Below are positions 10,515 through 64,000 of a DNA stretch of 64,000 bases, in pieces. The notes under the pieces were generated by a model. It was not told the origin of the DNA. It saw nothing but the letters and a program-made list of their open reading frames with translations, and did not search any database. The DNA is from Octopus bimaculoides. Its lineage: Eukaryota. A program made the translations under genes and the position numbers. Each line of letters starts with the position of its first letter. Within the stretch, counting starts at the first letter, position 1. Location of the stretch: positions 7,702,276 to 7,766,275 of the forward strand of contig NC_068983.1 of the NCBI RefSeq assembly GCF_001194135.2, given 5' to 3'.

Positions 10515-11190
<676 letters not shown>

Positions 11191-41163: not shown

Positions 41164-41244
41164 GACTGTTCTCTGCCCAATTTTCCCGAAACACAGCTGT
41201 TATGATCTCCAATGGATTTTACCATTTGAACTAAATCTTCAAAG
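41164..41244 (+). other. 5' UTR part of the first coding exon (spliced; implies an upstream non-coding exon)
   Basis: Polypyrimidine tract plus TAG acceptor ends at 41163 (ttttatttcttttcctgtgttatag|G). In-frame stops lie upstream of ATG 41245, which has a strong context (aagATGG). Confidence 0.6.
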
Positions 41245-41520
41245 ATGGGAAACATCTTTCATCGTTCCAGCCGAATTACTGACCCGGTGGCAGCATGGAA
41301 ACAACAGAATAGAGAATTTCCAGTGCACCCATTATATACCTTAGTAAACTTCAACAATGGAGGAAAACTTCTGGATGCGTACAATAAGGGAGGGAGAGAT
41401 AAATTGATACAAGCTTTAAAGGAACATGTGGAACCTTTGCTTTATAACCGAGGCAAGGGAGGTATTATCAGCAAAACGGAATATCTTCGTTGGCGATATC
41501 AAACTCGCCTGAGACTGTTG
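41245..41520 (+). CDS. iav: TRPV coding exon 1 (92 aa, MGNIFHRSS...LYTLVNFNNGGKLLDAY...EYLRWRYQTRLRLL)
   Basis: Resembles the iav/OSM-9 N-terminus (LYxL...GGxLI...LYNxGxG...EYLRW). Donor TTG|GTACGT, phase 0. Confidence 0.88.
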
Positions 41521-43621
41521 GTACGTATATAATATTTACTAAAATTAGTGTATAGATTAGATAAATTGATAAGCGTAGGTTTGGCTACGTGGTTAAAAGG
41601 TTCGCTTTTCAGCCACGGCCACGTAGCTTCTCTGTTCGATCTCATTATTCGGCATCTTCTGCTAAATAATATTAGGATGACCAAGGACTTGTGAAAGTCT
41701 AATTTGCTACATGCAGATGCCCATTGTGCATCTACTTACATATGTATGTATATANNNNNNNNNNNNNNNNNNNNNNNNNNNNNNNNNNNNNNNNNNNNNN
41801 NNNNNNNNNNNNNNNNNNNNNNNNNNNNNNNNNNNNNNNNNNNNNNNNNNNNNNNNNNNNNNNNNNNNNNNNNNNNNNNNNNNNNNNNNNNNNNNNNNNN
41901 NNNNNNNNNNNNNNNNNNNNNNNNNNNNNNNNNNNNNNNNNNNNNNNNNNNNNNNNNNNNNNNNNNNNNNNNNNNNNNNNNNNNNNNNNNNNNNNNNNNN
42001 NNNNNNNNNNGTACATGTATATATGTGTATATACGTACATCCTATGTCTATATATGTAATTTGTAATTGGTTTCCCGAACAAAAATAGGGCACTCAATAC
42101 ATTGTGATTGTGTCGAGTAAATGTTATTTACTATAAAATAGTTGATAATTCTAATTCTCTGTTAACGGAATTTCCTTCTCATTAGAGCATTCTTTAGACA
42201 GATGTGATTCTAGTGAAGGTTTTCTCTTGTAAGGTGTTTTATTTCAGGATTTTTACCTGTGATAAGGTGTTGTCAAATTTTGATAGAAGATATCGAGTAG
42301 CAGACAGGAATGTTTTTTTTTTAGATTATGTGTGTTTGTTGTAATGTGATATGTATGAGACATTTTCATTTCAGCAAAATCAGAAGTGTGTAGGTGTGAC
42401 GATGAAAAATATAAAAATTTGTAATTTGCAGCCCTGGTATACTGTAGAGCCAACGGCTCGAATAGCGATAAAATAGTATGATTATGCAATTTTTAGGTTT
42501 CTATCGCTCGATAAAAATTTTTTGGAAGAAATTTGCCCATGTCTGCATTTGGTGAAAATTTCAGCTCTGTTATTTAAATAATTATTTGAGATATTGAGAA
42601 CAAACAAAAGCCGGTCGTATATGTGTGTGTGTATGTGTTTGTTCTCAACCACTCGACAACCGGTGTTGGTTTGTTTACGCCCCCGTAACATAGCGGTTCC
42701 ATAAGCGAAAGTAATGGAATGAGTACCAAATTTTAAAAAAAGAAAATAAATACTGGGGTTGATTTGCTCTTCCAGTGGAGATCGATTATAGCCTCGATTG
42801 CGGCTGACCGTCGGTTGTGGTCAGCTTTTGTGAGGGACGTAGAGAACTCGTTGGTCGAAGCCGGCTCAACCCATTCTGGACAAATGTCGCCCCAAGTTCA
42901 AATAAGTAAGTAGTACACAACAACAACAACATCATCAGCATCAGCATCATTAGCATCAAAAGCAGCAGCAGTAGTAGCAGCTCTGGAACCAAACACAAAA
43001 TAAAATTCTTTCAACCAAAACTACCACATCGTAGTAAAATTAAGCTTACATACGCATTCACACACANNNNNNNNNNNNNNNNNNNNNNNNNNNNNNNNNN
43101 NNNNNNNNNNNNNNNNNNNNNNNNNNNNNNNNNNNNNNNNNNNNNNNNNNNNNNNNNNNNNNNNNNNNNNNNNNNNNNNNNNNNNNNNNNNNNNNNNNNN
43201 NNNNNNNNNNNNNNNNNNNNNNNNNNNNNNNNNNNNNNNNNNNNNNNNNNNNNNNNNNNNNNNNNNNNNNNNNNNNNNNNNNNNNNNNNNNNNNNNNNNN
43301 NNNNNNNNNNNNNNNNNNNNNNNNNNNNNNNNNNNNNNNNNNNNNNNNNNNNNNNNNNNNNNNNNNNNNNNNNNNNNNNNNNNNNNNNNNNNNNNNNNNN
43401 NNNNNNNNNNNNNNNNNNNNNNNNNNNNNNNNNNNNNNNNNNNNNNNNNNNNNNNNNNNNNNNNNNNNNNNNNNNNNNNNNNNNNNNNNNNNNNNNNNNN
43501 NNNNNNNNNNNNNNNNNNNNNNNNNNNNNNNNNNNNNNNNNNNNNNNNNNNNNNNNNNNNNNNNNNNNNNNNNNNNNNNNNNNNNNNNNNNNNNNNNNNN
43601 NNNNNNNNNNNNNNNNNNNNN

Positions 43622-44894
43622 TTAACAAAGGCCTTTGATACTGTAAATAGGGCCTTTCTATGGAAAATACTTGGCAAACTTGGATGTCCGGATCACTTTG
43701 TATCTATAATTAAATCATTTCATGATGGGATGGAGGCTTGGGTCAATGTTGTTGGTGGCATGGTGGGACCCATTCCTGTAGAGAATGGTGTCAAGCAGGG
43801 TGACATCCTTGCCCCAACTCTCTTTTCTTTGTACTTTGCTGCTGCTTTTACTCATGTTTTTGCTAAGGTTAGCTCTCTGGGAATATATGTCAGATATCGA
43901 TCTTCTGGCCGCCTCTTTAACCTTCACCGATTTGCTGCCAATTCAAAGGTTCTCCAGTCTATTATTCGTGACCTCCTTTATACAGATGACTGTGACTTAG
44001 TCACTCATACAGTGAATGACATGCAAATACTCATCAATTGCATTTCTGCTTCTTGCAAGGCATTTGGACTTGGCATTAGCCTGGACAAGACTGTTGTAAT
44101 GTTCCAACCTGCACCAGGAAATCCATATATGAAACCAGCTATCTTGGTTGAAGGAACAATTCTGAAGGTAGTAGACAAGTTTGTCTACCTGGGCAGCACA
44201 CTCAGCCGTTCTTGCTCCCTGGATGAGGAAATATCATTCAGGTTGCAGCGAGCAACTAATTCCTTTCGGTGTCTTAAGTCTCGTGTCTGGTCCTAGCATG
44301 GCATCGCAAGGCAAACAAAAGTTGCTGTGTACCGTGCATGTGTACTGACATCGCTCCTCTACTCATGTGAGACATGGACTCTGTACAAACGTCATGTAAG
44401 GGTCCTTGAACGCTTTCAACAGAGATGTCTCAGGCACATTCTCAATGTTGGCTGGACCTAAAAAATTCCAGACACACAGATCCTGAGGACAGCTGATATC
44501 TTGAGTATTGAGGCAATGGTGCACAAGCACCGGTTACGTTGGACAGGACACCTTATTAGAATGAAGAAATAGCAAGATTCCTAAGCAGATGCTCTATGGA
44601 GAACTTGTGAATGGAAGGAGACTCCGGCAGAAACCAAGGCTGCAATTTAAGGACTGTATCAAGTCCTCATTAAAGGCCTGTGATATGCAGGACACTGACT
44701 GGGAGAACAATGCCTGTCATCACCACGGATGGAGGAAGCAGGTTAAGGAGGGGATCGACACTTTTGAGAGAGCACGTATCCATCATGAAGAACTTAAGCG
44801 AGCTGCGCGAAAGCGCACGGCTCATATAGTGAATGGGGAAAGCTTAATCTGCAATGTTTGCAGTCGTGTATGCTTGTCAAGAGCAGGGCTCATT
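43622..44894 (+). mobile_element. RTE-clade LINE fragment (RT domain to C-terminus), pseudogenised, flanked by gaps, inside TRPV intron 1
   Basis: Translates as LTKAFDTVNR...GVKQGDILAPTLF...GRLFNL...LLYTDD...FVYLGS...LLYSCETW...RLRWTGH...LYGEL...CNVC. In-frame stops near 44294 and 44459, and a frameshift near 44570. Confidence 0.93.
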
Positions 44895-47357
44895 NNNNNN
44901 NNNNNNNNNNNNNNNNNNNNNNNNNNNNNNNNNNNNNNNNNNNNNNNNNNNNNNNNNNNNNNNNNNNNNNNNNNNNNNNNNNNNNNNNNNNNNNNNNNNN
45001 NNNNNNNNNNNNNNNNNNNNNNNNNNNNNNNNNNNNNNNNNNNNNNNNNNNNNNNNNNNNNNNNNNNNNNNNNNNNNNNNNNNNNNNNNNNNNNNNNNNN
45101 NNNNNNNNNNNNNNNNNNNNNNNNNNNNNNNNNNNNNNNNNNNNNNNNNNNNNNNNNNNNNNNNNNNNNNNNNNNNNNNATATATATATATATATATATA
45201 CGTATACGTATGCGCGTTTGTGTGTGTTTGTATGCATACACGTCCATCATCATCATCATCATCATTGTCATCATCATTGCTTCCGCTTTTCCATACTGTT
45301 ATAGATTGGACGGATCAATTTCAACACAGTTTCAGCTGAGCAAATTAGATTCTACTCCTTCCATTTTAGTATGAAAGCTATCCAGTGTGGGTAATCTAAA
45401 GGCCCTTCCGCTCAGATTCTCCAAGTCATTCCCTTTTAAACTAGATAATAGGAGAAACGCAAAACTTAACCTCAACGTATTGAAATACCTGAAAGGAATT
45501 AATTGGTTGTTTGTTAACAAATCTAATTACAAGACTCACTAAAAGCCTTGTTGTTTACTGTCTGGGTTTACAAAACTGGCAAAGTGTGTGCATTATTTAT
45601 TATTTGTAGAAGAAAGCTTGTAACGAGAGACATAGCAAACTGTCCAATATTAGTGTTTAGAACAAGTAGTTATTAAGAAACAGCAGCGACAAAAACAACA
45701 ATAATAATATACGAAAACTGGAGGTTATTTTTTTATTATTTCGAATGGCTTAAAACTATTTTATATCAATTCAGTATTAGTGTTAAGTGCTATGTAAGTA
45801 TTGTGCAGTGGAGGCGCAATGGCCCAGTGGTTAGGGCAGCAGACTCGCGGTCGTAAGATCGCAGTTTCGATTCCCAGACTGGGCGTTGTGAGTGTTTATT
45901 AAGCGAAAACACCTAAAGTTCCACGAGGCTCCGGCAGGGGATGGTGGCGAACCTTGCTGTACTCTTCCACCACAAGTTTCTCTCACTCTTTCTTCCTGTT
46001 TCTGTTGTATCTGTATTTCAAAGGGCCAGCCTTGTCACACTGTGTCACGCTGAATCTCCCCGAGAACTACGTTAAGGGTAGACGTGTCAGTGGAGTGCTC
46101 AACCACTTCCACGTTAATTTCACGAGCAGGCTGTTCCGTTGATCGGATCAACTGGAACCCTCGTCGTCGTGACCGACGGAGCGCCAACAGCAAAAGTATT
46201 GTGTGTTAGGATAGGAGATAAGGCTCCAGATGACAATAAAGGAGGTTATGGCAGTGGTGGTGGTGATGACAATGACAGCGAGGAAGTAAAAGAAAAAGTA
46301 TATAGTTGACTTTCCAAAGTGCATATCAAAATAATTGACAAAATCGAGAGATTTTAAGAGCAACGTAAAAGGATGAATAGATTGTAGTTCGCAAAGGTGG
46401 CAATTGTTCATGAGTAATTGGTGCATTTAATACAAAATATACATAAGAGACTGAATGATAATGGAATTGATAAGCGCATTGTCGATCTGCAGAAAAGTAT
46501 CATCATGTATTCTTCAAGAATCATATGATTCTTTAGAATTGAGGCGACATGCTGTCACCAAGCCTCAATATAACATCCCTACTAATTAAATTTGCATGTA
46601 ACAGCTTTTGAGTAATAATAATACTTTATCCTATTATCATAAGGTCTGGAATTCTGGAGGGGGGTGCTAACCGATGACATCGACTTCAGTGGTCATCTGT
46701 AACTTATTTCATCGACCCTCAAAAAGATGAAGGACAAAGATTGGCCTCGTCAGAATTTGAAGGTCAATTAGCGGTTCGGCAAGAAAGACCGGTAGAATAA
46801 GTACTAGGCTTACAAAGAATAAGTCCTGGGGTCGATTTGCTCGACTAAAGGCGGTGCTCCAGCATGGCCACAGTCAAATGACTGAAACAAATAAAATAAA
46901 AAAATAAAAGAATATAAATGATGCTCAGTTTGTACACCGTACAGATGGAAATGATACAGTATCGAATGACTAGGATTTATTTATTATTAATCAAGTGTTC
47001 GATACAAACTGTTGCGAAATTTTATTGTAGTGAACTGCTTTATAATAATTGGTTTGACGTCAATCGTCTGCAGGATATTATTTCTCTATGCAAATGAACG
47101 AAAGCCAGTTCAAATGCTGCTGCTAAAATGATTTTAAAAAAGTAAGCGGCATACAAAGTATTACAAACGATCTTAGGATGGTGCATAGAGTAACCATTCT
47201 CGTATTACACACTCGTCATTTCCGAATTTATTAAACAGAGTATTTGATAAATGTGTCTTATCCTTAGTGGTCGTAGTTACTACATAGAAGGTAATAATTT
47301 CATCATATTTGGTGGTATTGGAAATTTGAATTTGAAATTAAGAAACTACAAATTCAC

Positions 47358-47523
47358 ATGAAGTAGTTGTATGCTGTCAACTTAATGTGACGGTCCCCTG
47401 AAGGGAATAATACTACTGTTGGTTAGACCTAGGAAGCGGCGCAGCTTCCTAGGTGTAACCAACAGTAGTATTATTCCTTACAGGGGACTATCACATTAAG
47501 TTGACAGCATACAACTACTTCAT
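47358..47523. repeat. Near-perfect 80-bp inverted repeat with 6-nt loop
   Basis: Arms 47358-47437 and 47444-47523 match 75/80; loop GGCGCA. Confidence 0.95.
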
Positions 47524-48252
47524 CGTATCACTACTGCATAAATCTCTCTGAGAGATTTAGAAATGTATTATTTCTAAATACAAATTCACGTGCTTATTAT
47601 TTTTATTTTGCTTACTTGTTACGAAATACTTAAAATTTCTAGTCAGTGGTAATCATGTACAGTAGTATTTCATTCTTTTCGGAAAGTGTCAGCATAATAT
47701 AATCTGTTACTTGATAATTAAACATTTTATGAAGTGAGACATTTCATTAAAGGTGAAAATAATCAGTCTGGGGGAAAGTCATGGAATAGGTTTTTCTTTT
47801 TCTTTTTGTTCTTAGAGCGTTTGTAGTTTAGCAATCAAGAGAAAAGAGAGCAAGTTATTCTCCAGCATCATACACTCTGTGTGAGTCTGAAAGGTCACTA
47901 TTATGTTTTTGACGTAATCATGCCTCCATTACGATGCCGGTCAGTTACTGCGTTAGTATTCTAAATATTCCATAGTCCCAAGGTAGTTTCTTGGATCGCA
48001 AAATTCTTTGTTGTTGCATATTTAGCTATTTTCTTTTGTGGAATGTTCCCAGAAACAGGAACGAGTAATGATACCGTTGGTAGGTCTAATAACACAGGAC
48101 AAATTGAAATAGGACCAGATATAATTGCTGATATTACATTTGAAGGAGCAGTGTTTCGCCTGGGTCGAACAATCTAGTACTTTTGGAAGTTTGTTCCTTT
48201 CTGCCGCTATTTTCCCTGCATGTACTCCATGTATGTGCCTATAGTAGAAAGG

Positions 48253-48288
<36 letters not shown>

Positions 48289-48894
48289 GAGTGAGAGAGC
48301 GGTGCATGCCATCAAAGTGACGCTGGGGTAAAATATACGAAGCCCAGTATACCCATCATGACTACCCATTTGATAAGGGTACACCGGGCACATGCATCAC
48401 AACCATATGTGTGCAACATAGTAATCTTATATCAAGATAAACAGCGCATGACCTCGCAGGTGGGGCCCAGTAAGAATTTTCTTCAGGTCGAGTAGCCCAT
48501 CCCGCTCAAAAAGTCCCTGAATAAGGTTTGTTTAAGGATGTTGAGCAAAAGACCCATNNNNNNNNNNNNNNNNNNNNNNNNNNNNNNNNNNNNNNNNNNN
48601 NNNNNNNNNNNNNNNNNNNNNNNNNNNNNNNNNNNNNNNNNNNNNNNNNNNNNNNNNNNNNNNNNNNNNNNNNNNNNNNNNNNNNNNNNNNNNNNNNNNN
48701 NNNNNNNNNNNNNNNNNNNNNNNNNNNNNNNNNNNNNNNNNNNNNNNNNNNNNNNNNNNNNNNNNNNNNNNNNNNNNNNNTATTTGCTGTAGACCATCTT
48801 TTTATACCAAGACAAAACAATGTACATGATAACACTTCCAATCAATTAAGATCAGAAGCCATGAGAGCCACTGCCTGGTACTGCATCTGGGCAT
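48289..48894 (-). mobile_element. Approx. 600-bp interspersed element bounded by (TTA)n on both sides (family E), with an internal gap
   Basis: Non-coding sequence between (TTA)n at 48254-48288 and 48895-48921. On the minus strand it ends ...ctctctcactc(AAT)n, like a retroelement tail. Confidence 0.55.
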
Positions 48895-50867
48895 TTATTA
48901 TTATTATTATTATTATTATTAGTGGAAAGAAGGCGTCGAGCTTGCCGAATCGTTAGCACGCCGGACAAAATGCTAAGTGGAATTTGGTCCACCTTCATTG
49001 TTTTTGGTTTTCGTTGCTCTTATTGCTGATTCTGCTGTCGTTACTGTAATTATTGGGTTTTTCGTCCAGTATTAGCACTTTCGTTTCTTTAATAATGACT
49101 CTATAAAATTTTACTACAATCGGTCCGCTCGTACGTGTGTGTGTGAGTGTTTTTGTTATTGCGTATGTACCCCACCCCCAATCGCTTGTTCACCGGTGTT
49201 GGTTTGTCTACGTTCTCGTAAGTTAGCAGTTTTTGGCAAAAGTGACCGACAGAAAAAGTAATAAGTTTAAAATAATAAGTACTGAGTTTAGCAAAAGAGA
49301 CCGATAAAATAAGTACCACGCTTAAAAAAAAAACATAAAGACTACTAGGGTCGATTCGTTTGACTAAAATTCCTGAAGGAGGTGTCTCAGCATGGTCGCA
49401 GTCTAATGATTGAAGCAAGCAAAAGATAAAAGATAAGAGATTTTGTTTTGATAAATCAGAGATTACAGCTCTAATTCTTCTGAATCTAGTTTCTTTAGCT
49501 TTTTTTTTCTTTTATTCAGTCGAGAGATGGCAAAGGCGACTATATCATCATTGAATTGCTCAATGTTTCGCATGACTGGTAATTGTTGCGTTGTAGATGT
49601 ACTGTTATTTCTGCAGCGATAACAAGACGAATACTGTAGTCTCTGATGTTATATCGTTTATCAGAAAACTGGTTTTTACACAGTGGCAAACAGCAAACCT
49701 GAAGGAAAACGGCTGACTAAAAAAAAAACAAAAAAACACACAAGTGACGTAGTTAGTGTTACCGTAGTGATAACTGTATGTTAGAGGACAGATTGAAATC
49801 TTTCCCTTCTTTAATCAGATCTTGCTTGCATGTTTGAAAGTCATCATTGGAAGGCTAAATCGTCGCTGATCGATCAGAAATTGTTCAAGTGGTGCGTCAC
49901 CAATCGTAAGCACGTCGAACATCGAGGTCATCAGTTGTGGGGTACACACGCACACTTCTCTCTCTCTCTCTCTCTCTCATACACACACACACACTGACAA
50001 AAACACACCCCAACAAAACACACACACATATATTTATATTTGGCGAGTGTTTGGTTACCCTTATTTTCTTCCCTTTCCACAATATTTCTTAGAACCCTTA
50101 ATTTGCTTATTTTCAACCACTAGTAAACATTTGGCTTTCTCAGACAAATTATTCTGCTTAGAACGTTATATCTCTCTAGATTCTTTTGTGGCTTCCAGTC
50201 ATTGTTTAGAACCTACAGTGGAATCATCATGATGAGTTTCTGTCGATTATATCGACCATAGTACATAGTTCAACCGGGTACTGATTTTAACGATGTCTTT
50301 ATCAAATGCCTTAGTTACGTTAATTAAGACGTAAGCACAGACACAAACTCCCCCTCACATAAACACAAATAGATGAAATAAATTTCTTTTTATGGTGATT
50401 CGAGTTTCACGTAATTGTGATCTTAAAGCGAGAACTATTTTTCTTGTGGTGTCATACACGTTTTATACACATTTGAACAGGTTCATTCTTTAGTCTATAG
50501 CTATCCGCTTCATTGGCTGGTTTTCAATGTTGTTATGCTATAGTTCTATAGGAAAGTTGGTTATGCATCATTAGATGTATACCTGACTTTCCTATATAAA
50601 ATTAATGAATATATAACGGAACGCTGAACTCCAGACCATCAACTTAAACAACACTTTATTCAGGTGGTAAATATATACATCTTTAGTTCTTGTTGTTACA
50701 GCTTCTGTGTGTATGAGCATAGTTGTTGGGACGTTGTTATGTAGGTGTAAGCGAGCTGTCGAGTGTAAGTCCGAAAGATGGAGAGTGACAACTAAACACG
50801 TCCATGCTCTATTGCTGGCCAGCAAGAAAGAGAATGAATTGAGCGGGAACTCTTGGTTGTTTAATTC

Positions 50868-50940
50868 TACGCATGCGTGAGACTACGCATGCACACGGCG
50901 TTACTACAGTTCTTTTTAGAGTATCGACTTTGGCTGACGT
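50868..50940. promoter_or_regulatory. Promoter-like motif cluster inside TRPV intron 1
   Basis: tACGCATGCGTg (perfect 10-bp palindrome), tacgcatgcaca, actacagttc and tgacgt within about 75 bp of non-repeat DNA. Confidence 0.25.
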
Positions 50941-51623
50941 AGTTTCATTTGTCAGTTTATTGTTTATAGAATATTTTCCTGGGCTCTCCTGTTACTGTTC
51001 TTCTGTAGTTTTGTTGCTTTGATTTTTGTTTCTATTTATAGCTGTGATTTAGCGTTCTATTTCCGATATCCTGCTTTTTCTGACTTCTGCTAAGTTGCTT
51101 CATATCCTGTTGATCAATATTTTTTTTTGTTCGGCATTTATTTTCTTGACACATAAATTGCATTTTTTGAAACTATTTCCAGTTTTTTTTATTGCCTATT
51201 GCTCGCTGGTCACTAGTTACGTTATTTCTGATGTCCTATTTATTTCACTTCAGTTATTTCATATTCATCCAAGTGTTATGTTTATCATAGATTATTTGTC
51301 CAACGTTGTTTCTTCAATTGGTATAGTTATCTGGTTGCTTGTTATAGTTCAAAGTTCCACTTTTGTTTTTATTGAAATACTATTCTGGGCCTTTATATAG
51401 CTATTTCATTGTGTATGTATGTCTTTTTCTTCTTCTTTCCCACTCATTTGACTGCAGCCGTCACGCTGGGGCGCCGTCTTAAAGAATTTTAGTTGAACAA
51501 ATCAACTCCAGTTTTTAAGCCCGGTACTTTTTCTATCAGTTTCCTTTGTCGAACCGCTGAGTTACGCGGACGTAAATACACCAACGCCAGTTGCCAAGCG
51601 GTTGTAGTGGGTAAACAGAGATA

Positions 51624-51665
<42 letters not shown>

Positions 51666-52202
51666 CATACATGCGTGCACACATACATACACGACAGGCT
51701 TCTTTTAGTTTCCGTCTACCAAATCCACTTACGATACTTCGGTCGGCCCAAAGTGCCACACAGTGAGACTGAATCTGGAACCATGTTGTTGGGAAGCAAA
51801 CTTCTTACCATACAGCAACACCACACACAAAAGCAACTCCCTAACACACGTTATATTTAATCAGCAAGTGTCACAGAGGGACTCAAGAGCTAAGAGCTTC
51901 GTCCATTTGCAATTATCAAGATGAAATGCCCTTGAGTTATTCTATAACTTTTGTCAATTAAATAAAAAAAAATATCTATATACTTATGTTTTGAGATCTA
52001 TTTTACTGTGTATAACCAAACACATGCACATACACGCAGACACATATGTATATGCACACTGCATTCACTTTTCAGACAAGAAAAAATTTGTACTGGAGGT
52101 TTAAAACTTGAAAATTGGGTAGCTTGCGTGCAATACTCACAAGTTACACCAGAATGTCCATCTCCTAGACAAATATTCTGACATATATATATATATACAC
52201 AC

Positions 52203-52251
<49 letters not shown>

Positions 52252-52287
52252 CATACGTACGTATGTATGTACGTATGTATGTATACA

Positions 52288-52555
52288 TACACAAGGTGCA
52301 TTCCAGAAGCTTTGAGATTTTTTCAGAAGAAACATTTGTTAATTTCAAAACAATAAAAAAAAACCCAAAAACAACTCCGATTTCCTTCCAAGTAGGATCC
52401 CCTAATTTCAATGCACTTGAAGTAGCGCTCCAACCACTTCGTAAAGGTCTCATAGAAGTCCTCCAAAATGAAGGTACCCAACACAATTGTCATAGCATCC
52501 TTCATTTTCTCAATGTCTTCAAAACACCTGCCCTTGAGGTTCTCCTTCAGTTTAG
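52288..52555 (-). mobile_element. Mariner 3' fragment
   Basis: Minus strand reads KLKENLKGRCFEDIEKMKDAM...KWLERYFKCIEIRGSYLEG, followed by a TIR-like end near 52288. Confidence 0.78.
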
Positions 52556-52932
52556 GGAACAGTGTCTGGACAGTAGGGATGGTGAGGGAAAGTTTTGGTT
52601 CCTATCTCTGTCAAATAGTTGGTTACCTGGATGGCATGGTAGACTGGTACATTATCCTGGTGCCGGTGACACCGACCCAAATGGAAATCAGTTCGTCAAA
52701 AGAGACCGATAGAACAAGTATTAGCTTTAAAAAATAAACGTTGTTGTCGATTCTTTCGACTAAAAACCCTTCAAGGTGGTTTTCCAACATGACCGCCGTC
52801 CAATGACCGTCCAAATAAAAGCAGTTATATATATATATATGTGTGTGTGTGTGTATAGATTAGAGACAGATATTCTCTGTATAGAATATACATCGTAGTA
52901 CTCAAGAGATTTGAACTTGAGCAGGTAGAGAA

Positions 52933-53378
52933 GTAAATGTAAGGACAAACAAGTTAGGAAAGTCGATATACAAAGAATATAAAATACATTTAGTACAAAA
53001 AACGTACATACGTACACAGATAAAAACGTTCGACTTACACAGAATGGAAACGATATCACAAATTAATGGGCTTGAGTAGGAGTTTTACGAGCCCAACAGC
53101 TGTTTCTGGAGGCTTGGTGGTCCGAAATAATGGTTATAACTTGATTCCATCATCGGATACCACCAGCCTCCGTCTTCAAGGAAGAAGTTTACATTTTAAG
53201 TGTTGACAAAACGGCGTTTAAAGATGGCATCCTACTCAACCCCCTTAATCCCGGATATTGTTTCCATTCTGCGTAAGTTGGATTTTTTAAATATGTAAAC
53301 ATATGTATATATATTTTAAAATTGTGTTTAGTATTTTTTGTATCTCGACTTGCCTAACTTGTTTGTCCTTACATTTAC
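52933..53378. mobile_element. Fold-back/long-IR element (about 450 bp)
   Basis: Outer arms 52933-52974 / 53337-53378 match 40/42. Inner arms 53031-53057 / 53254-53280 match 24/27. A further gagtagga/tcctactc pair lies inside. Confidence 0.75.
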
Positions 53379-53381
53379 ACC

Positions 53382-53413
<32 letters not shown>

Positions 53414-53433
53414 TGTGTTTGTCTGTCTATCTC

Positions 53434-53498
<65 letters not shown>

Positions 53499-53675
53499 TA
53501 ATACACATACATATATGTGTTCGTGCGTAAGCATATGCATGTATCATACACATATATATCACACACACACGGATATATTTTTTTGAATACTTGCAAATAG
53601 ATACTGCATAAATCACACATATTTTGTTATACATCCTAACATGGACATGTTATACTTGTAATATATATATACATA

Positions 53676-53898
53676 CAGGGCGTCTATAAATTACCTTTAC
53701 AATATGAAAAATTCAGAAAAAAAAGATAAAGATAACTTTGAGTTCACAGGAAAACATAGAGAAACAATGTTTAATTAGTGACGTCAGAGCACATCCACGT
53801 GGGCTTCAATGCTTACACGCAACCTGCTTAGTTAACCATGTTTGTCTTTTTTTTTTTCTGTAATTTTCAAATTGTAAAGGTAATTTATGGACATCCTG
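53676..53898. mobile_element. Tc1/mariner-type MITE (223 bp) with TA target duplication
   Basis: TIRs cagggcgtctataaattacctttacaat / caggatgtccataaattacctttacaat (reverse complement), flanked by TA on both sides. Confidence 0.85.
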
Positions 53899-54355
53899 TA
53901 TATCATGCATATTCATTTAAGGACATCTCGATGGATTTAAATTTCTGATAGTTTCCATTTGTATAACTACAATTTTTTTTTCTCCCAATAAATTCTGGTT
54001 TGCTTTATAATGAGAGTACTTGATCGTGTTTGTATGGTGAATGTGATAAATGGTTTGTTAAGAGGACAAAAATGTCTCAAATGATTAGGCAGCTAACCAA
54101 AGATGTTAATTAGATCAATATGATTTAATATAAAAGAAGCTATTAGTAGCAAATGTGTAGAGAGCACTTACGTGTTCCTAATTGTTTTCCACAGAAAAAA
54201 AAAGAGCATAAGCAGATGTGCATGTTTGTCTGGCTGTCTGATTGTATGTATGTACGTTCGTAGGTACGTACGTACGTGTGTGTGTATGTATGTATGTATG
54301 CGTGCATGTATGTATGCATGTATGTATGCGTGCATGAATGCATGTATCTATGCAT

Positions 54356-54448
54356 TTGACCGTTGACTGAACACTATTCAATTTTTTTTCTCCGTGTTTT
54401 TCTCCTTGTCTCCGTATTCTTTCTGTTGAAGAGCGTAGCTCGAAACGT
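54356..54448. mobile_element. Probable Penelope-like element terminal repeat (copy 2), running into a gap
   Basis: 93/93 identical to 13733-13825. Confidence 0.45.
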
Positions 54449-55724
54449 NNNNNNNNNNNNNNNNNNNNNNNNNNNNNNNNNNNNNNNNNNNNNNNNNNNN
54501 NNNNNNNNNNNNNNNNNNNNNNNNNNNNNNNNNNNNNNNNNNNNNNNNNNNNNNNNNNNNNNNNNNNNNNNNNNNNNNNNNNNNNNNNNNNNNNNNNNNN
54601 NNNNNNNNNNNNNNNNNNNNNNNNNNNNNNNNNNNNNNNNNNNNNNNNNNNNNNNNNNNNNNNNNNNNNNNNNNNNNNNNNNNNNNNNNNNNNNNNNNNN
54701 NNNNNNNNNNNNNNNNNNNNNNNNNNNNNNNNNNNNNNNNNNNNNNNNNNNNNNNNNNNNNNNNNNNNNNNNNNNNNNNNNNNNNNNNNNNNNNNNNNNN
54801 NNNNNNNNNNNNNNNNNNNNNNNNNNNNNNNNNNNNNNNNNNNNNNNNNNNNNNNNNNNNNNNNNNNNNNNNNNNNNNNNNNNNNNNNNNNNNNNNNNNN
54901 NNNNNNNNNNNNNNNNNNNNNNNNNNNNNNNNNNNNNNNNNNNNNNNNNNNNNNNNNNNNNNNNNNNNNNNNNNNNNNNNNNNNNNNNNNNNNNNNNNNN
55001 NNNNNNNNNNNNNNNNNNNNNNNNNNNNNNNNNNNNNNNNNNNNNNNNNNNNNNNNNNNNNNNNNNNNNNNNNNNNNNNNNNNNNNNNNNNNNNNNNNNN
55101 TAGATAGGGAAATGCTGGAAAACCGGAGAATGAAAAAGAAAGCAAAAGTAGGGTGGGTGGATAGGTAATTTAGAATTATTTCCCTTTAAATCGCAAAATA
55201 TAAAACTCAAAAGATAGTGGCCTCGAGCATTGGTTGGAAATTGAGAAACGTTTTAAAATATTCATTTTGTGTTGTAAACTCTGTTTTTCACTTTTTTTCT
55301 GTCTCTCTTCACTCTGTTGGCATTTTGTTTCATCATAGTGTAGATATTTTTACCCACTATGATGGTACATACCTTTGCCCCTCTGTTCCAAACAACAATA
55401 TCCAGCCTGTTTTGTCTAAATTTGACTAAAGTTTTGATCGGAATATTCCACCAGTATTTCTAGAGTTGGTGTTTATGAATGTATTCCATAACAGAGGGAT
55501 TTTCCAAGTTTATTTCAGGACAGTCTTTTTTTATGGATGATAATGTAAATTGTTTTAGCAACATCGTGTCGCATAGGGAGGTAGTACCGTGACGACATTT
55601 TAGGACATCTGCTTATCAAATGTGTGCTGTCTTCCAAGGAAACATGACATAGCCGACACATGTGGTTGCACCTTGGGATTACAAGAGTGTCATTGTCTCT
55701 CTTGTATGTATGTATGTATGTATG

Positions 55725-55758
<34 letters not shown>

Positions 55759-55829
55759 TGTATGTATGAATGTATGTATGTATGTGTGTGAGTGTGTATG
55801 TATGTATATGTTTGACATAGTATAAGCAT

Positions 55830-56336
55830 CTTGTGAGAAAAATTAGGCATAAGAGGAATCAGATGTGGTGTGCGAGAGAGACGACTGCGTTGGTATGGTC
55901 ATGTGATGCGTATGGACGAGAACAACTGTGTAAAGAAGTGCTGATCTCTAACTGTGGAGGGAACCTGTGGTAGAGGTAGACCCAGGAAGACATGGGACAA
56001 GGTGGCAAAGCATGACCTTCGAACTTTGAACCTCATGGAGGCAATGACTAGTGACCGAGACCTTTGGCATTATGTCATGCTTGAGAAGAAGACCCATCAA
56101 GCTGAGCAAAATCACAGTCGTGGCAGATATCGGGGTCACACAAATAGCACCTGTGCCAGTGGCATGTAAAAGCACCCATTACATTCTCAGAGTGGTTGGC
56201 ATTAGGAAGGGCATCCAACCATAGAAAACCATGCCAAATCAGACTGGAGCCTGGCACAGCCTTCCAGCGTGCCGTCCCAGTCAAACTGTCCAACTCATGC
56301 CAGCATGGACAACAGACGTTAAATGATGATGATGAT
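55830..56336 (+). mobile_element. RTE LINE 3' end (family A): last ORF codons, 3' UTR and (GAT)n tail
   Basis: Translates as RRLRWYGHVMRMDE...GRGRPRKTWDKVAKHDL...DRDLW, then the recurring UTR ggaagggcatcc...ccatgccagcatgga...gacgttaaa(tga)n. Confidence 0.85.
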
Positions 56337-56602
56337 ATATATATATATATATATATATGCATGCACAGACACTCACAATATACTTCTTTAATTTTCTGTC
56401 TACCAAATCCACTCTACTCACAAGTTTTTGCTTGGTGTGACATTATAGCTGAAGACACTTGTCCAAGGTGTCATGCATATGTAAATATTTATATCCCATG
56501 AAATTAATCCTAACCTTTTTTTTTTAATGTAAAAGGATTCATGAAGCCATAACATGTTTACAATGCTTTCTTTATGTCTATTTTTTTTCTCTCTCTCTCA
56601 AG

Positions 56603-56849
56603 GATACAAATAAGGCAATGCCTTTAAAAACAGATGAAGAACTTCTTTCAGAATATCGCGAAGATAAATATCAAAAGTTTACAGAACATGAAGCTTGTTG
56701 GAGCCTGAACGCTCGTGGTCCCATGGGGGAAACAGCTTTGCACATTTGTTTCCTTCTAAATACTCCGGTTCACATACAAATAGCACATATTATGATTGAA
56801 ATTTACCCCAAACTGGTTCTCGATGTCTATGAAGGAACTGAATATTTTG
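56603..56849 (+). CDS. iav: TRPV coding exon 2 (DTNKAMP...EHEACWSLNARGPMGETALH...YEGTEYF-G), start of the ankyrin domain
   Basis: Acceptor ctctctcaag|GAT, donor TTTG|GTATTT; 247 nt, phase 0 to 1. Confidence 0.92.
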
Positions 56850-58642
56850 GTATTTCAAATGTCTTTTATTTCAACATTTCACTCTTTGCTCTACTAGCTA
56901 GCTGTTGTTTATATTGTTATTGTTGTTGTTGACGATGATGATATTTTTGTTGTTGTTGTTACTTAGCTCCAGTAGTTGAACTGATCTGTTCTGTATTCAA
57001 GGCTATTTCTATCCACGATCGTTTCCTCTTTTATGTTTTGTTTTTGTTTTTAGGCATTAAGTATCAAGGAATATATTATTCAATGTGTTTGTTTGTTATT
57101 TTATCTTTTAAAATGGTAAGGTATGCTTTGAAGGGAAATATGGTTTACTATTTCTGTATGGGCTCCCTGGCTAATTATTTACTCTGCTCGTCAGTTCTCT
57201 GAAAATAATTGACTGGTAATAGTATCCATGTATATATATATATATATAGGTAGAGACAGATAGCCTGGGATATAAAAATAGATAGATTGATATACAGAGA
57301 GANNNNNNNNNNAGATAAAAGAGAGGAAAAGGTTTGTCAGATGTTCATTTCATGGATTCATTTCATTCAGCATTCACTTGTCCATGCTGGCATGGGTTGG
57401 ACGGTTTGACCAGGGTTGGTAAGCTAAGGGGCTGCACCAGACTCCAGTCTGATTTAACATGGTTTCTACGGCTGGATGCCCTTCCTAATACCAACCACTC
57501 CAAGAGTGTAATGGGTGCTTTTACGTGCCACTGGCGAGGGTGCCATTTGTGTGACACCAGTATCTGTCAGTTACAGGTTTCACTCGGCTTGATAGATTTT
57601 CCCTTCTTAAGCACTGTATAAGGCCAAAGTCTTGGTCACTTGTCATTGCTTCCGTAGATCAAATACAGTGAAGGAATTCCAACCATGTTTTGAGGTTCAC
57701 TACCTCCATAGCTCCTTTATAGGATTCAAAAGCCAAGGACATCATCAGGAGGAACCATGTCTGGTTTTGGCCCCTACCCCTCTACCGTTTTCAACATGGC
57801 ACCCCCACCGCTCTCAGATGTGTCTTCAGCTCTGGTGTTAAGTGCATTTTTTTCTTTTTCTATGGCTTTTTGTTCTTTGGTTTCTTTGATACAGTGTTGA
57901 TGAATATCAGCAGGCGAATGTCCACCATGGCAAATTTCCCTTTAAATACTCACTGGGTAGCCTCCAGCAGCCAGGGTCAGCTAACTGTCACATGACACAA
58001 TCCATGCTTCAGCTGACCAATGGGGGAAAAGTGCATGTAGTTTTGGTCTGCACCCTCTCTTGACCCACCTTCCGACAGAGCCATGCTAGATTCAGCTCCA
58101 GCAGCCAGAGTCGATTAGCCAACTATTATACTAAAATATAATTAAAGCCAGAAAGATATATAGAAAATTTTCAGCTCAACCTTCTAATGTGTAGAATCTA
58201 AAAGAATCCAAGTGGGAACACAAGTTCCACCGTCTCAACTCTACTTAATCAAGATGAGTGTGGAAGTAGCATTCTTACTAAAAAATATATTCATAGGTTT
58301 CAAATTTTGACACGAGGCCAGCAATTGTTGGGGAGGGGGCCAGTCGATTACATCAACCCCATTGCTCAATTGCTACTTATTTTACTGGCCCTGAAAGGAT
58401 GAAAGGCAAAGTCAACCTCAGTGGAATTTGAACTCAGAACATAGAGGCAGATAAAATGCCACTAGATATTTCGTCTGGTATACTAACAATTCTGCCAGCT
58501 CCCATAAATATAGAAAAGAAGTTTCAGTTTTTAGTAAATTTTTTATAAAATATTTCGTTTGATAGTCTAAGCATAAGACACAGTCCCACACTCACATGAT
58601 CTCATTTAAAATATGTTTTATTTTTGTTTTTCTCCTGACCAG

Positions 58643-58798
58643 GTGAAAGTTGCTTACACATTGCTGTTGTTAATGGTAACCTAAAATCTGTTCGGTTTTT
58701 GATTTCCAAAAACATAAATGTTAACCAGAGAGCAACAGGTATATTTTTCTTACCTGCTGATCAAGTAGGATGGCGCAAAAAAGAAACTGATTTTAAAG
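58643..58798 (+). CDS. iav: TRPV coding exon 3 (GESCLHIAVVNGNL...NQRATGIFFLPADQ...ETDFK-G)
   Basis: Acceptor ctcctgaccag|GT, donor AAAG|GTAATT; 156 nt, phase 1 to 1. Contains an ankyrin repeat and the RAxGxFF finger loop. Absent from the ORF track. Confidence 0.93.
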
Positions 58799-58861
58799 GT
58801 AATTAATTGACTTCTAGTGTAGTCTTTTTGTATTGCCTTCATTTTTTTCTTCCGTTTGATC

Positions 58862-59410
58862 ATGGCTGTGTGGTTAAGAAGCACACTCACTTATCAGCTG
58901 CATGGGTTTGGGTTCAGTTCCAGTGTGTGAGACCTTGGGCAAGTGTCTTTTACTATAACCCTTGATTGACCAATACCTTGTGAATGAATTTGGTAGATGG
59001 AAGGTGTGTGGAAGCCCGTTGTATATATGTGTGTGTGTGAGTGTGTGTGTGTGTGTATGTGTGTGTGTCTGAGATTGTTTTTGTCTCCTGTGTGGTAAGA
59101 AACTTGCTTCCCAACCACATGGTTCTGGGTTTAGTACCACTGCATGGCACCTTGGGCAAGTGTCTTCTACTATAGTCCCGGGCAGGCCAAAGCCTTGTGA
59201 GTGGATTTGGTAGATGGAAACTGAAAGAAGACTATTATGTGTGTGTGTGTGTCTGCGGGTCTTCTTTCAGTTTCCGTCTACCAAATCAACTCACAAGGCT
59301 TTGGTCGGCCCAAGGCTATAGTAGAAGACACTTGCCCAAGATGTCACGGAGTAGGTCCGAACCCGAAACCATGTGGTTGGTAAGGAAGCTATTTAACCAC
59401 ACAGCCACTC
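58862..59410. mobile_element. Three SINE B 5' halves in TRPV intron 3: 58862-59023(+), 59088-59232(+), 59259-59410(-)
   Basis: Repeated gcaagtgtctt...ctata...gccttgtga..ggatttggtaga.ggaa core; the last two copies are inverted relative to each other. Confidence 0.88.
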
Positions 59411-59577
59411 CAGCCTAAACTTTTCAAGGCGGTGCTCCAGTATGGTCATAGTCCAAAGACTGAAACAAGTAAAAGATAAAAAGTAAAATGAACACTGAAA
59501 ATTAAGAGTGGAAAATGTGTTTTTTTCTTCTTTTGGAAATTCCTTTTCTCCTTTCTGCTTCTCCATCTTTCTTTTAG

Positions 59578-59732
59578 GGTTGGCTCACTATGGGGAATAC
59601 CCGCTTGCATTCGCTGCCTGCCATGAACACTATGAGATTTACGACTACCTCATGAATTATGGTGCTAACCCAAACTTTCAAGATAGTTTTGGTAATACAG
59701 TGTTGCACTTGGTTGTTATTACTAACAGAGTG
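59578..59732 (+). CDS. iav: TRPV coding exon 4 (GLAHYGEYPLAFAACHE...ANPNFQDSFGNTVLHLVVITNRV)
   Basis: Acceptor ctttcttttag|GG, donor GTG|GTAAGT; 155 nt, phase 1 to 0. Carries the TRPV signature YGEYPL(S/A)FAAC. Confidence 0.95.
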
Positions 59733-60254: not shown

Positions 60255-60398
60255 GACTTTTATAAATATGCTGTGAAGCATATGACCATTCCTGGAGACA
60301 CAACAATTACCAATATCTATGATCTAACACCTCTTGCTCTGGCCTGTAAACTAGGACGACCAGAAATATTTCATGTGATGCTTGAATTAAGTGCAATC
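60255..60398 (+). CDS. iav: TRPV coding exon 5 (DFYKYAVKH...DLTPLALACKLGRPEIFHVMLELSAI)
   Basis: Acceptor gttgtttgcag|GAC, donor ATC|GTAAGT; 144 nt, phase 0 to 0. Confidence 0.94.
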
Positions 60399-60414
60399 GT
60401 AAGTAGAACAGTCA

Positions 60415-60447
<33 letters not shown>

Positions 60448-60689
60448 TGGATGTATGTATGTATGTATGTATGGATGGATGGATGCATGAATGTATGTAT
60501 GGATGGATGGATGGTTGGATGTATGGATGGATAGATGGATGGATGTATATGTGTGTACATATGTGTCTGTGTATAAGTATCTATATGTATATACATCTAG
60601 AAACATATACATGGGTGTGTGTAGAGAGAGAAATAGAGAGATACATTGATGCACATATCTATATCAACAAATCCATCTATAAATTTCTC

Positions 60690-60735
<46 letters not shown>

Positions 60736-61070
60736 AGTATATGTGTATGCATGAGTTCCTTTTGAGTGTTGGGCCTCATGGAGGCAATGCCTAAGACCTT
60801 TGGCATTATGCTATGCTTGAGAAGAAGACCCATCAAGCCAAGCAAAGTCACAGTCATGGCAGATACTGGTGTCATGCAAATGGCACCTGTGCTGGTGGCA
60901 CGTAAATGCACCCATTACACTCCCAGAGTGGTTGGCATTAGGAAGGGCATCCACCCATAGAAAACCATGCCAAATCAGACTGGAGTCTGGGGCAGCCTTC
61001 CAGCTTACCAGCCCTGGTCAAACTATCCAGCCCATGCCAGCATGGACAACAGACGTTAAATGATGATGAT

Positions 61071-61152
<82 letters not shown>

Positions 61153-61591
61153 TGTATACTGAGCGTGTAGCACTTGTGCAGCAGACCAATACAAGTTTGA
61201 AAGACATGATAGTTGGACCGGCTGTGTTGTTACATGACCAGAAAATAACTAACCAGAAGTTAGAGAAACATAGAGAATGTGGTTTTGGAAGGAGAGTGCA
61301 AAAACGGATATTGTGTGTATGTGTGTGTGTGCGAGCTGTGTATGTGGGATACTGTGTGTGTGGAGAGTATATATATATACATGTTCTTTTGTGTGTGCGC
61401 GTGGGTGCTGGTGGTGAGTATTGTGTGAGATGGAAGTACATGTGTGCATGTGTGTTTGTGTTTAAAAGCAGTGGATTGAAATATTTATCAGTTCTACTGC
61501 ATGTTAATTCCCTTGTACATTCAGGCAAGATATTAAAATGTAGGAAACGGAGAATGATGTAATGTCTTGTCTGGTGTTTATTTTGTTTCAG

Positions 61592-61673
61592 GAACTATGG
61601 CGTTACAGCAATATCACTTGCTCTGTTTATCCAATTGCAAACCTGGACACTGTTGACCCAGACGGAGTAACGT
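61592..61673 (+). CDS. iav: TRPV coding exon 6 ([27 protein letters not shown]), ARD-to-membrane linker
   Basis: Acceptor ttttgtttcag|GAA, donor ACGT|GTAAGT; 82 nt, phase 0 to 1. WRYSNITC is characteristic of the iav clade. Confidence 0.94.
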
Positions 61674-61842
61674 GTAAGTGGAACTTTCTGTTTTTGTTCT
61701 ATCCTTTCATTTCTACCTACCTACCTTCCAACCTACCTACCTACCTACCTACCTACCTACCTACCTGTCTACTTACCTACCTGTCTACTTACCTACCTAC
61801 CTTCCTACCTACCTACCTACCAGCATATTCTACTTAAGTACC

Positions 61843-61893
<51 letters not shown>

Positions 61894-61902
61894 CTCTATC
61901 TA

Positions 61903-61950
<48 letters not shown>

Positions 61951-63193
61951 CCTGTTTACCTACCTATCTACCTACCCAGCTAGATAGCTATTCATTCATC
62001 CGTCTATTCTCTTATCCATCTGTTCAGCCATGTTGGTTAAGAACGTCTTAATTTAAAAAAAACAAATAAGGCTCAGGTATGGCTATATAGTTAAGAAGTT
62101 TGCTTCCAAACCATGTAGTTTCAGGTTCAATCCCACTGTGTGGTACCTTAAGCTAGTGTCTTCTATAACTGTCTCAGACAAACCAAAAGCCTTGGGAATG
62201 GATTTGGAGGATCGAAACTAAAAACGTCTGATGTGTGTGTGTGTGTGTGTGAGTGTGTAGACCCTTGTCTTGGCATTCTCTTTTTACTTGTTCCAGTCAT
62301 TTGACTGCGGCCATGCTGGAGCACCACCTTTAGTCGAGCAAATCGACCCCAGGACTTATTCTTTGGAAGCCTAGTACTTATACTATCGGTCTCTTNNNNN
62401 NNNNNNNNNNNNNNNNNNNNNNNNNNNNNNNNNNNNNNNNNNNNNNNNNNNNNNNNNNNNNNNNNNNNNNNNNNNNNNNNNNNNNNNNNNNNNNNNNNNN
62501 NNNNNNNNNNNNNNNNNNNNNNNNNNNNNNNNNNNNNNNNNNNNNNNNNNNNNNNNNNNNNNNNNNNNNNNNNNNNNNNNNNNNNNNNNNNNNNNNNNNN
62601 NNNNNNNNNNNNNNNNNNNNNNNNNNNNNNNNNNNNNNNNNNNNNNNNNNNNNNNNNNNNNNNNNNNNNNNNNNNNNNNNNNNNNNNNNNNNNNNNNNNN
62701 NNNNNNNNNNNNNNNNNNNNNNNNNNNNNNNNNNNNNNNNNNNNNNNNNNNNNNNNNNNNNNNNNNNNNNNNNNNNNNNNTATATATACATATATACGAC
62801 GGGCTTCTTTTCAGTTTCCGTCTATCAAATTCACTCACAAGGCTTTGGTCGGCCTGAGGCTATAGTAGAAGACACTTGCCCAAGGTGCCATGCAGTGGGA
62901 CTGAACCCGGAACCATGTGGTTTGTAAGCAAGCTACTTACCACACAGCCACTCCTACACCTATGCAATTTTTCTAAGCAAGTTTCACTATCATACAAGTG
63001 ATGTTCGTTTGTATATCAATTTCACCATGTTAGCATGGGATGACCTCCGGAGAATACTTACTCCAAACTCAACCTCAATGACGAGATATCAACTGCCAAT
63101 TCCTTAAACCTGCAATCGTCTGCCCATTCCACTTTTGTTCAGTTAAAATTATTTAAGATCCTTATATACCTTTTAATTTTCCGTTACCAACAG

Positions 63194-63309
63194 CATGGAC
63201 AACAGCTTTAAACCTCATCCTTGATGGTGAGACTGACGAGCATCTTGATATGATGGAAGGTAAAGTTATTAAACAATTACTAGATGAAAAATGGAAAACC
63301 TTTGCTCAG
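63194..63309 (+). CDS. iav: TRPV coding exon 7 (SWTTALNLILDGETDEHLDMMEGKVIKQLLDEKWKTFAQ), linker and pre-S1 helix
   Basis: Acceptor ttaccaacag|CA, donor CAG|GTGAGT; 116 nt, phase 1 to 0. Absent from the ORF track. Confidence 0.94.
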
Positions 63310-63394
63310 GTGAGTGGCATCACAGTTTTTACTATTTCTACTGGATGAATGGTTAAGTAGTTTGCTTCACAGCCATGAGGTCGCAGGTTCATAC

Positions 63395-63895
63395 TGCCAA
63401 GCATTTCACCCGGTGTGCTAACGTTTCAACCAGCTCGCTGCTTTTTATTCTTTTCTACTCTTGGCACAAGGCCCGAAATTTTTGGGGAGGGGGGGGGCAG
63501 TCAATTAGAACGACCCCAGTATACAACTGGTTCTTAATTCATCGACCTCGAAAGTTGACCGCGGAAGAATTTGAACTCAGAACGTAAAGACAGATAAAAT
63601 ACCGCTAAGCATTTCACCTGGTGTGCCAACGTTTCTGCCAGCTCGCCACCTTAGAGACAGTATATATTTATTTCTTCATTACCCACAAGGGCCTAAACAT
63701 AGAGGAGACAAACAAGGATAGACAAACGGTTTAAGTCGATTACATCGTCCCCAGTGCATAACTGGTTCTTAATTTATTGACCCCGAAAGGATGAACGGCA
63801 AAGTTGACCTCGGTGGAATTTGAACTCAGAATGTAAAGACAGACGAAATACTGCCAAGCATTTCGCCCGGTGTGCTAACGTTTCTGCCAGCCTGC
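63395..63895 (-). mobile_element. SINE C cluster filling TRPV intron 7. Other C copies: 2555-2715(-), 4074-4268(-), 22258-22480(+), 58310-58500(-)
   Basis: Two near-complete copies plus a head fragment between exons 7 and 8. Confidence 0.85.
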
Positions 63896-63949
63896 TGCTT
63901 TGCTGTTTATGTATATTATGTAATCACTTTCACCATTTATTTATTTCAG

Positions 63950-64000
63950 AGAGGATTTTTCAAATTACTAGTTTTCGCCTTCTTACACCTGGTTCTCTTG
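63950..64000 (+). CDS. iav: TRPV coding exon 8, partial (RGFFKLLVFAFLHLVLL...), start of S1
   Basis: Acceptor ttatttatttcag|AGA. Open and hydrophobic to the window edge, at the position expected for S1. Confidence 0.82.

Follow-up and report, generated by a model that had tools for sequence, protein, structure and literature searches.

Does the last 23 kb of this stretch of Octopus bimaculoides DNA hold a genuine TRPV channel gene and, if so, which one? The stretch, the whole of which we call the window, comprises 64,000 nucleotides (assembly GCF_001194135.2, contig NC_068983.1, forward-strand positions 7,702,276 to 7,766,275), has a GC content of 38.7% and contains 19 runs of N. A first-pass annotation made from the letters alone had placed a multi-exon channel of the iav/OSM-9 clade at 41164-64000. 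In the literature (including PMC5064019) insect Inactive (Iav) is the counterpart of nematode OSM-9 and of TRPVA or alphaTRPV, and Nanchung (Nan) that of the OCR proteins and of TRPVB or betaTRPV. Our analysis makes it very probable that what lies here is the 5' portion of the only alphaTRPV gene of octopus, which is orthologous to the Ovtrpv2 group and codes for what would be a heteromeric, nicotinamide-gated sensory subunit. The window holds eight of about 15 exons and 409 of about 932 codons (44% of the coding sequence).

The gene model was rebuilt independently by combining tblastn of homologues against the window with three-frame translations and splice-site sequences. The resulting plus-strand model has eight exons, 1227 nt and 409 codons with no stop, exactly the exon and codon counts proposed earlier. 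The gene is as described, but its ATG is at 41245 and not at the 41164 first given as the start. Exon 1 (41245..41520, residues 1-92) carries this ATG, a conserved MGN N-terminus and the N-terminal region that precedes the ankyrin repeats. It is separated by a first intron of 15,082 bp (41521..56602) from exon 2 (56603..56849, residues 93-175), which was located by tblastn and encodes the linker into the ankyrin domain and the first ankyrin repeats. Exon 3 (58643..58798, residues 175-227) contributes an ankyrin repeat and the finger loop QVGWRKKE, and exon 4 (59578..59732, residues 227-278) the GEYPLAFAAC ankyrin core, where the best tblastn matches occur, at up to 69% identity. The last ankyrin repeats are found in exon 5 (60255..60398, residues 279-326). 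Exon 6 (61592..61673, residues 327-354) encodes a coupling-domain beta strand with Trp329 (W329) at 61598-61600 and Tyr331 (Y331) at 61604-61606. The linker and the segment preceding the first helix (pre-S1), with EKWKTFAQ as its final residues, are supplied by exon 7 (63194..63309, residues 354-392), and the start of the first helix (S1), RGFFKLLVFAFLHLVLL, by exon 8 (63950..64000, residues 393-409), which is truncated by the end of the window; all eight exons lie on the plus strand. Exons 3, 7 and 8 had been described as invisible among the open reading frames (ORFs), and all three are indeed missing from the program's ORF list; exon 8 runs off the window edge. The strings AACHEHYE, QVGWRKKE and KHMTIPGD, earlier singled out as divergent, are all present in the translation.

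All seven introns have GT...AG boundaries and polypyrimidine tracts, and the 14 splice sites are canonical. The donors read GTACGT (exon 1), GTATTT (exon 2, phase 1), GTAATT, GTAAGT (three times) and GTGAGT. A long polypyrimidine tract precedes the exon 2 acceptor at 56603; a second in-frame acceptor at 56615 would give four residues fewer, and the sequence alone fits either. The start codon at 41245 is the first ATG following an in-frame stop, and it is credible because the MGN/DPxxAWKxQN motif of the N-terminus is common to gastropod, bivalve and hemichordate homologues. Directly before the ATG, a short pyrimidine-rich stretch on the same strand is followed by AG at 41243-41244, so that splicing could join an exon of the 5' untranslated region to this point.

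Seven runs of N fall in the gene region, all of them intronic (five in intron 1, one each in introns 2 and 6). The run in intron 6 (62396-62780) is missing from the program's list. Since even the closest gap keeps a distance of 235 bp from the nearest exon, no reading frame crosses one. When all seven junctions were aligned with 13 molluscan, insect, nematode, hemichordate and cnidarian homologues, the alignment was seamless at each of them and no extra homologue residues appeared at the junctions of introns 1, 2 and 6, so that no coding exon is hidden in the gaps. The TRPV exons are single-copy and show no self-similarity in a window of which approximately 26-30% of the bases are repeated. 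This property, together with a match to the Inactive chain at E = 9e-120, establishes that the eight exons are real and not a product of chance.

To which type of TRPV does the protein belong? In a phmmer search against all PDB chains Inactive scored 403 bits (the E value just given), Nanchung 263 and TRPV6 115. The Inactive alignment is collinear, pairing model residues 30-409 with chain residues 33-403, and it bears out the coverage earlier ascribed to the exons, namely the N-terminus, ankyrin domain, linker and S1 start. Hidden Markov models (HMMs) were built for each clade from ecdysozoan Iav/OSM-9-type, ecdysozoan Nan/OCR-type and vertebrate TRPV5/6 sequences, with molluscs left out, and scored the protein at 476, 341 and 150 bits, respectively. 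A phylogeny had been proposed as a check for grouping with Nan/OCR or another TRP subfamily. In our distance-based neighbour-joining (NJ) tree (41 sequences, 383 columns, 200 bootstraps) the window protein instead lies inside the Iav/OSM-9 clade with a bootstrap of 76%; the Nan/OCR clade holds Nanchung and OvTRPV1 of O. vulgaris (P0020, CAI9738794.1). The finger loop between ankyrin repeats 3 and 4 is short and is without the Nan/OCR-type insertion of about 12 residues. This DxxDHExV... insertion is carried by Nanchung and OvTRPV1 and is lacking in the window and in all of the Iav/OSM-9-type sequences aligned. Neither feature of Nan/OCR membership, the finger insertion or a higher similarity to Nanchung, was found. 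Judged by score, tree and finger loop, the protein is placed in the Iav/OSM-9 (TRPVA, alphaTRPV) clade, as the first-pass annotation had it.

We had initially suspected a Nan/OCR-type protein, since exon 1 matched a Trichinella protein better than one from Panagrolaimus. That suspicion did not survive the PDB search, the tree and the HMMs. The Trichinella and Caenorhabditis matches are OSM-9-like, while the Panagrolaimus match is OCR-like.

Pfam reports ankyrin repeats only (Ank, Ank_2, Ank_3, Ank_4 and Ank_5 between residues 175 and 323, with Ank at 175-204 and Ank_2 at 236-323), which is the expected result for the cytosolic half of a TRPV. The ankyrin region is collinear with those of the solved chains of Iav, Nan and TRPV6 and aligns to them essentially without gaps; the figure of six repeats comes from the PDB-chain alignment and from PMC12808645. 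Residues 327-409 align with Iav residues 321-403, covering the coupling-domain beta strands, EKWKTFAQ, pre-S1 and the hydrophobic start of S1.

Which octopus gene is this? A quantitative PCR (qPCR) primer for the alphaTRPV of Octopus maya, from the supplement of a 2026 survey of cephalopod TRP channels (PMC13402157), matches exon 8 at 24 of 24 bases (63966-63989), and 100 shuffles gave no match. Intron 1 contains a remnant of a long interspersed nuclear element (LINE) that matches two O. vulgaris proteins, at 81% and 90% identity; all other matches are at 62% or below. On these two matches the DNA, earlier taken to be cephalopod, is octopus DNA and the gene is the alphaTRPV of that genus. Neither the second O. 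maya primer nor a Sepia primer matched within the window; the former was not expected to, because its 100-bp amplicon starts 35 bases before the window end, and nor was the latter, because Sepia has diverged. The matching primer is labelled 'R' in the supplement and corresponds to the sense strand of the gene, so that the F and R labels in the primer table appear to be swapped.

According to two surveys, one of them PMC13402157, each of 13 cephalopods, four Octopus species among them, has exactly one alphaTRPV and exactly one betaTRPV. The putative orthologues in this group are O. vulgaris Ovtrpv2, O. bimaculoides LOC106882030, O. sinensis LOC115209468 and O. maya PV783833. The catalogued proteins are XP_052822662.1 of O. 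bimaculoides (888 aa), XP_029633752.1 of O. sinensis (932 aa), CAI9719439.1 of O. vulgaris (782 aa) and that encoded by PV783833 of O. maya (749 aa), and public cephalopod alphaTRPV models as a whole extend from 498 to 932 aa (PMC13402157, Table S1). This spread of lengths suggests that exons have been missed in several public annotations, and the isolated exon 1 is a likely casualty. A search through the exon 1 ORF found no record of the exact gene product in public assemblies. The exon 2 protein search gave no match above about 60% identity and no cephalopod orthologue among its matches, and in a large protein database no cephalopod alphaTRPV turned up and no homologue exceeded about 714 aa, the best matches being gastropod partial models at 48-49% identity. 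No peptide in the paper supplements matched the window protein.

How far can other explanations account for these observations? Assigning the protein to the Nan/OCR-type (betaTRPV) subunits, or to the genuine orthologues of TRPV5/6, is an idea invited by the databases, where most relatives are named 'TRPV5-like' or 'TRPV6-like', and by an ankyrin core that is common to all TRPVs. We consider it practically out of the question. Nanchung scores 140 bits and TRPV6 288 bits below Inactive, the clade HMMs give the same order and the NJ tree splits the three groups; the octopus betaTRPV OvTRPV1, moreover, is only 36% identical to the model, and the finger insertion is absent. The PDB scores, tree, finger loop and clade HMMs thus refute both identities, and according to the literature the TRPV5/6 names of invertebrate sequences are misnomers. 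The identification of the locus as the single, functional alphaTRPV gene of octopus has several points against it. Placement within the Iav/OSM-9 clade is poorly supported (NJ bootstraps of 20-36 over 383 columns), and the window protein does not group with the other molluscs. The proposed orthology to OvTRPV2 draws on clade, octopus origin, the one-copy surveys and a single primer match. The window ends 17 codons into S1, short of the pore, the TRP box and the calmodulin helix of the C-terminus, and the locus is known here from its DNA. That it is intact downstream and behaves like OvTRPV2 is something that we infer.

It is in the light of such points that a lineage-specific extra alphaTRPV, rather than the 1:1 orthologue of Iav/OSM-9, has to be weighed, a suggestion also made in the first-pass annotation on the strength of the divergent stretches. 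Paralogues of this type (TRPVA) are known in some molluscs (two in scallop, and we saw two Batillaria sequences), the branching order within the clade leaves room for one, and the identity of the protein to other molluscs (45-54%) is no higher than that to insects (45-48%). Nevertheless, with one alphaTRPV in each of 13 cephalopods in two independent surveys and a perfect match to the O. maya alphaTRPV primer, a paralogue is highly unlikely, and the divergent stretches turn out to fall in loops or on the surface, at positions where variation is seen across all the orthologues. The suggestion is not supported. Even less to be expected is a pseudogene or truncated copy, with its 5' exons intact and disabled downstream or not expressed. 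Only 44% of the expected coding sequence is within the window, the locus is dense in transposon insertions and insertions resembling short interspersed nuclear elements (SINEs), and the public Octopus models vary in length (749, 782, 888 and 932 aa). Against this stand 409 codons free of stops and frameshifts, the canonical splice sites and the conservation of functionally critical residues. The O. vulgaris orthologue yields a full-length cDNA and a working channel, the O. maya alphaTRPV is measurable by qPCR with the primer that matches exon 8, and the length spread is more probably due to exons missed by annotators. We therefore retain the single octopus alphaTRPV gene as the identity of the locus, a main verdict that is unaffected by the share of the gene within the window or by the distance-based tree.

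What might the encoded half-protein do? W329 and Y331, in the motif ELWRYSNI, are both conserved and correspond to W323 and Y325 of Iav in the stink-bug channel whose structure is solved. That structure is a 2:2 Nan-Iav tetramer in which the nicotinamide pocket is located in the Nan ankyrin domain and closed by the Iav coupling-domain beta sheet, and the Iav mutations W323A and Y325A abolish nicotinamide binding (PMC12808645). Nan-Iav and OSM-9/OCR-4 are nicotinamide-gated when co-expressed (PMC5064019); the background on heteromers and nicotinamide given with the first-pass annotation is correct on both counts. In O. vulgaris, OvTRPV2 is OSM-9-like and OvTRPV1 OCR-like, expression of both is found chiefly in arm tip, sucker and brain, and each rescues the corresponding C. 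elegans mutant, OvTRPV2 doing so for osm-9(ky10), with nociceptive behaviours of the worm restored. A sustained oocyte current at 100 uM nicotinamide was obtained only with OvTRPV1 and OvTRPV2 together (bioRxiv 10.64898/2026.03.27.714695). The proposal of a sensory or nociceptor candidate has thus met, in the O. vulgaris counterpart, with the results that it predicted.

The part encoded in the window is cytosolic up to the first helix, running from the MGN N-terminus through the six-repeat ankyrin domain, the coupling-domain beta strand and the pre-S1 linker to the start of S1. By analogy with these systems, the subunit would not work alone but would assemble 2:2 with a betaTRPV (Nan/OCR-type) subunit, and its coupling-domain beta strand would, via W329 and Y331, cap the nicotinamide pocket in the ankyrin domain of the partner. 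The heteromer would be a nicotinamide-gated cation channel of sensory tissues (arm tip, suckers and brain) and may contribute to chemical and mechanical aversive sensing. A role as the obligate alphaTRPV partner is indicated because of the stink-bug structure and the O. vulgaris co-expression results; heteromer formation, gating, expression and worm rescue are all taken from the papers cited and not from the window locus, and they carry over to it by analogy. It is also conceivable, if improbable, that cephalopod-specific substitutions on the ankyrin surface and in the finger loop (LAHYGEYPLAFAACHEHYE, QVGWRKKE) give the octopus heteromer a ligand or partner specificity tuned differently from that in insects and nematodes, or else that the species carries an uncatalogued second alphaTRPV copy. 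The retuning idea comes from the proximity of these substitutions to the inter-subunit junctions, which in the insect channel bind the agonist.

The intron positions of the gene can be compared with those of its relatives. One homologue model (P0017) is 60% identical to exon 1 over exactly 92 residues and then, at the junction of exons 1 and 2, reads into the intron. A Batillaria model has a 27-residue insert precisely at the exon 4/5 junction, and a Pinctada model leaves the family alignment precisely at the exon 5/6 junction. The oddities of the latter two suggest introns at matching positions in other molluscs, and the three models together suggest that the TRPV intron positions are old. 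An orthologous exon 1 (60% protein identity) is also present at 10001-10276 of contig ctg121612l (L001) in ENA assembly ERZ21867824, a eukaryotic contig in an assembly labelled 'metagenome'. Its last codon is number 92, as in the window, and its donor is GTAAGT as against GTACGT. Neither exon 2 nor any later exon was found on this contig within 10 kb on each side of exon 1, and for this reason a long first intron seems to be common to L001 and the window.

The remainder of the window is rich in repeats. In addition to its five gaps, intron 1 contains SINE-like repeats and the LINE remnant mentioned above (43730-44894, plus strand), which Pfam assigns to the reverse-transcriptase family RVT_1; it has frameshifts and a zinc-finger-like C-terminal tail and ends at an N gap. 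The two O. vulgaris proteins that match it are 'hypothetical' reverse-transcriptase proteins. A mariner/Mos1-like transposase remnant lies at 27168-28004 on the minus strand, an HTH_48 ORF and a Transposase_1/DDE ORF being split by a stop. Weaker, mariner-like C-terminal fragments at 34680-35000 and 52326-52601, both on the minus strand, are candidates without Pfam confirmation.

An interspersed repeat family of about 400 bp has at least 20 members, complete copies or fragments, which occur in both orientations and are 65-95% identical; several of them lie in the TRPV introns (examples are 15577-15941, 32595-33010, 38612-39006, 51488-51822, 58863-59411 and 62781-62961). ARAGORN found no tRNA-like part in this family. 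A second family, of about 220 bp, has five copies at 26029-27149 and others at 40848-41066, which ends about 180 bp upstream of the TRPV start, at 58311-58501 and, within intron 7, at 63446-63653 and 63734-63891. An ORF scan of positions 1-41000, with no homology search, shows no conserved coding exon and nothing but repeats, microsatellites and remnants of transposons. Five of the six frames are open across a long block of low complexity at 10474-11287. Scans of the window for tRNAs and Rfam families found nothing.

The gene itself is already known, being catalogued in cephalopods and functionally tested in its O. vulgaris counterpart, and the octopus Iav/OSM-9-type subunit has been identified as one of only two cephalopod TRPVs. 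The co-expression experiment with nicotinamide proposed in the first-pass annotation has likewise been carried out for O. vulgaris, where Ovtrpv2 proved to have 15 exons and a 2799-bp product, with N-terminal exons that had been automatically mispredicted (bioRxiv 10.64898/2026.03.27.714695). What the window adds is annotation detail, in that the exon with the true start codon is set apart from the others by a first intron of 15 kb with many gaps and repeats. This isolation plausibly explains why public models vary from 749 to 932 aa and why the N-terminus of the O. vulgaris protein had to be corrected by hand. Curation of cephalopod TRPV models and the design of primers or guides can make use of the exact exon map, which covers the cytosolic half and with it both residues of the agonist pocket.

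Comparison with known channels places the window protein among its relatives. Insect Inactive, as seen in the stink-bug Nan-Iav-calmodulin structures (PDB entries 9NVN-9NVR), is 48% identical over 370 aligned residues, the alignment being collinear from the N-terminal region as far as S1. The layout of the ankyrin domain, with six repeats, is shared, and so is the WRY motif, whose W323 and Y325 in Inactive complete the pocket for nicotinamide and afidopyropen. The octopus protein has about ten more residues between its N-terminal region and the first ankyrin repeat, and the finger loop and several stretches on helix surfaces differ (CHEHYE in place of CANESI and KHMTIPGD in place of RHPKMPAS). 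C. elegans OSM-9 belongs to the same clade according to the literature, and the model shares 42-43% identity with OSM-9-like proteins of nematodes; these differ in their N-terminus and in having F, not Y, after WR. The betaTRPVs Nanchung, OCR-2 and OvTRPV1 share the overall TRPV architecture and represent the obligate heteromer partner, but are only 36-38% identical to the model. The finger-loop insertion of about 12 residues is theirs, they lack three residues after ankyrin repeat 5, and they have WQI where the window protein has WRY; OvTRPV1 is encoded elsewhere, on chromosome 22 of O. vulgaris. The closest parallel in clade, host and multi-exon structure is with OvTRPV2 (cDNA PX926346, chromosome 3) and the other catalogued octopus alphaTRPVs; the O. 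maya alphaTRPV primer is identical to exon 8, and the window covers the first 409 of about 932 residues. In OvTRPV2, as in the window gene, the N-terminal exons were overlooked by automatic annotation.

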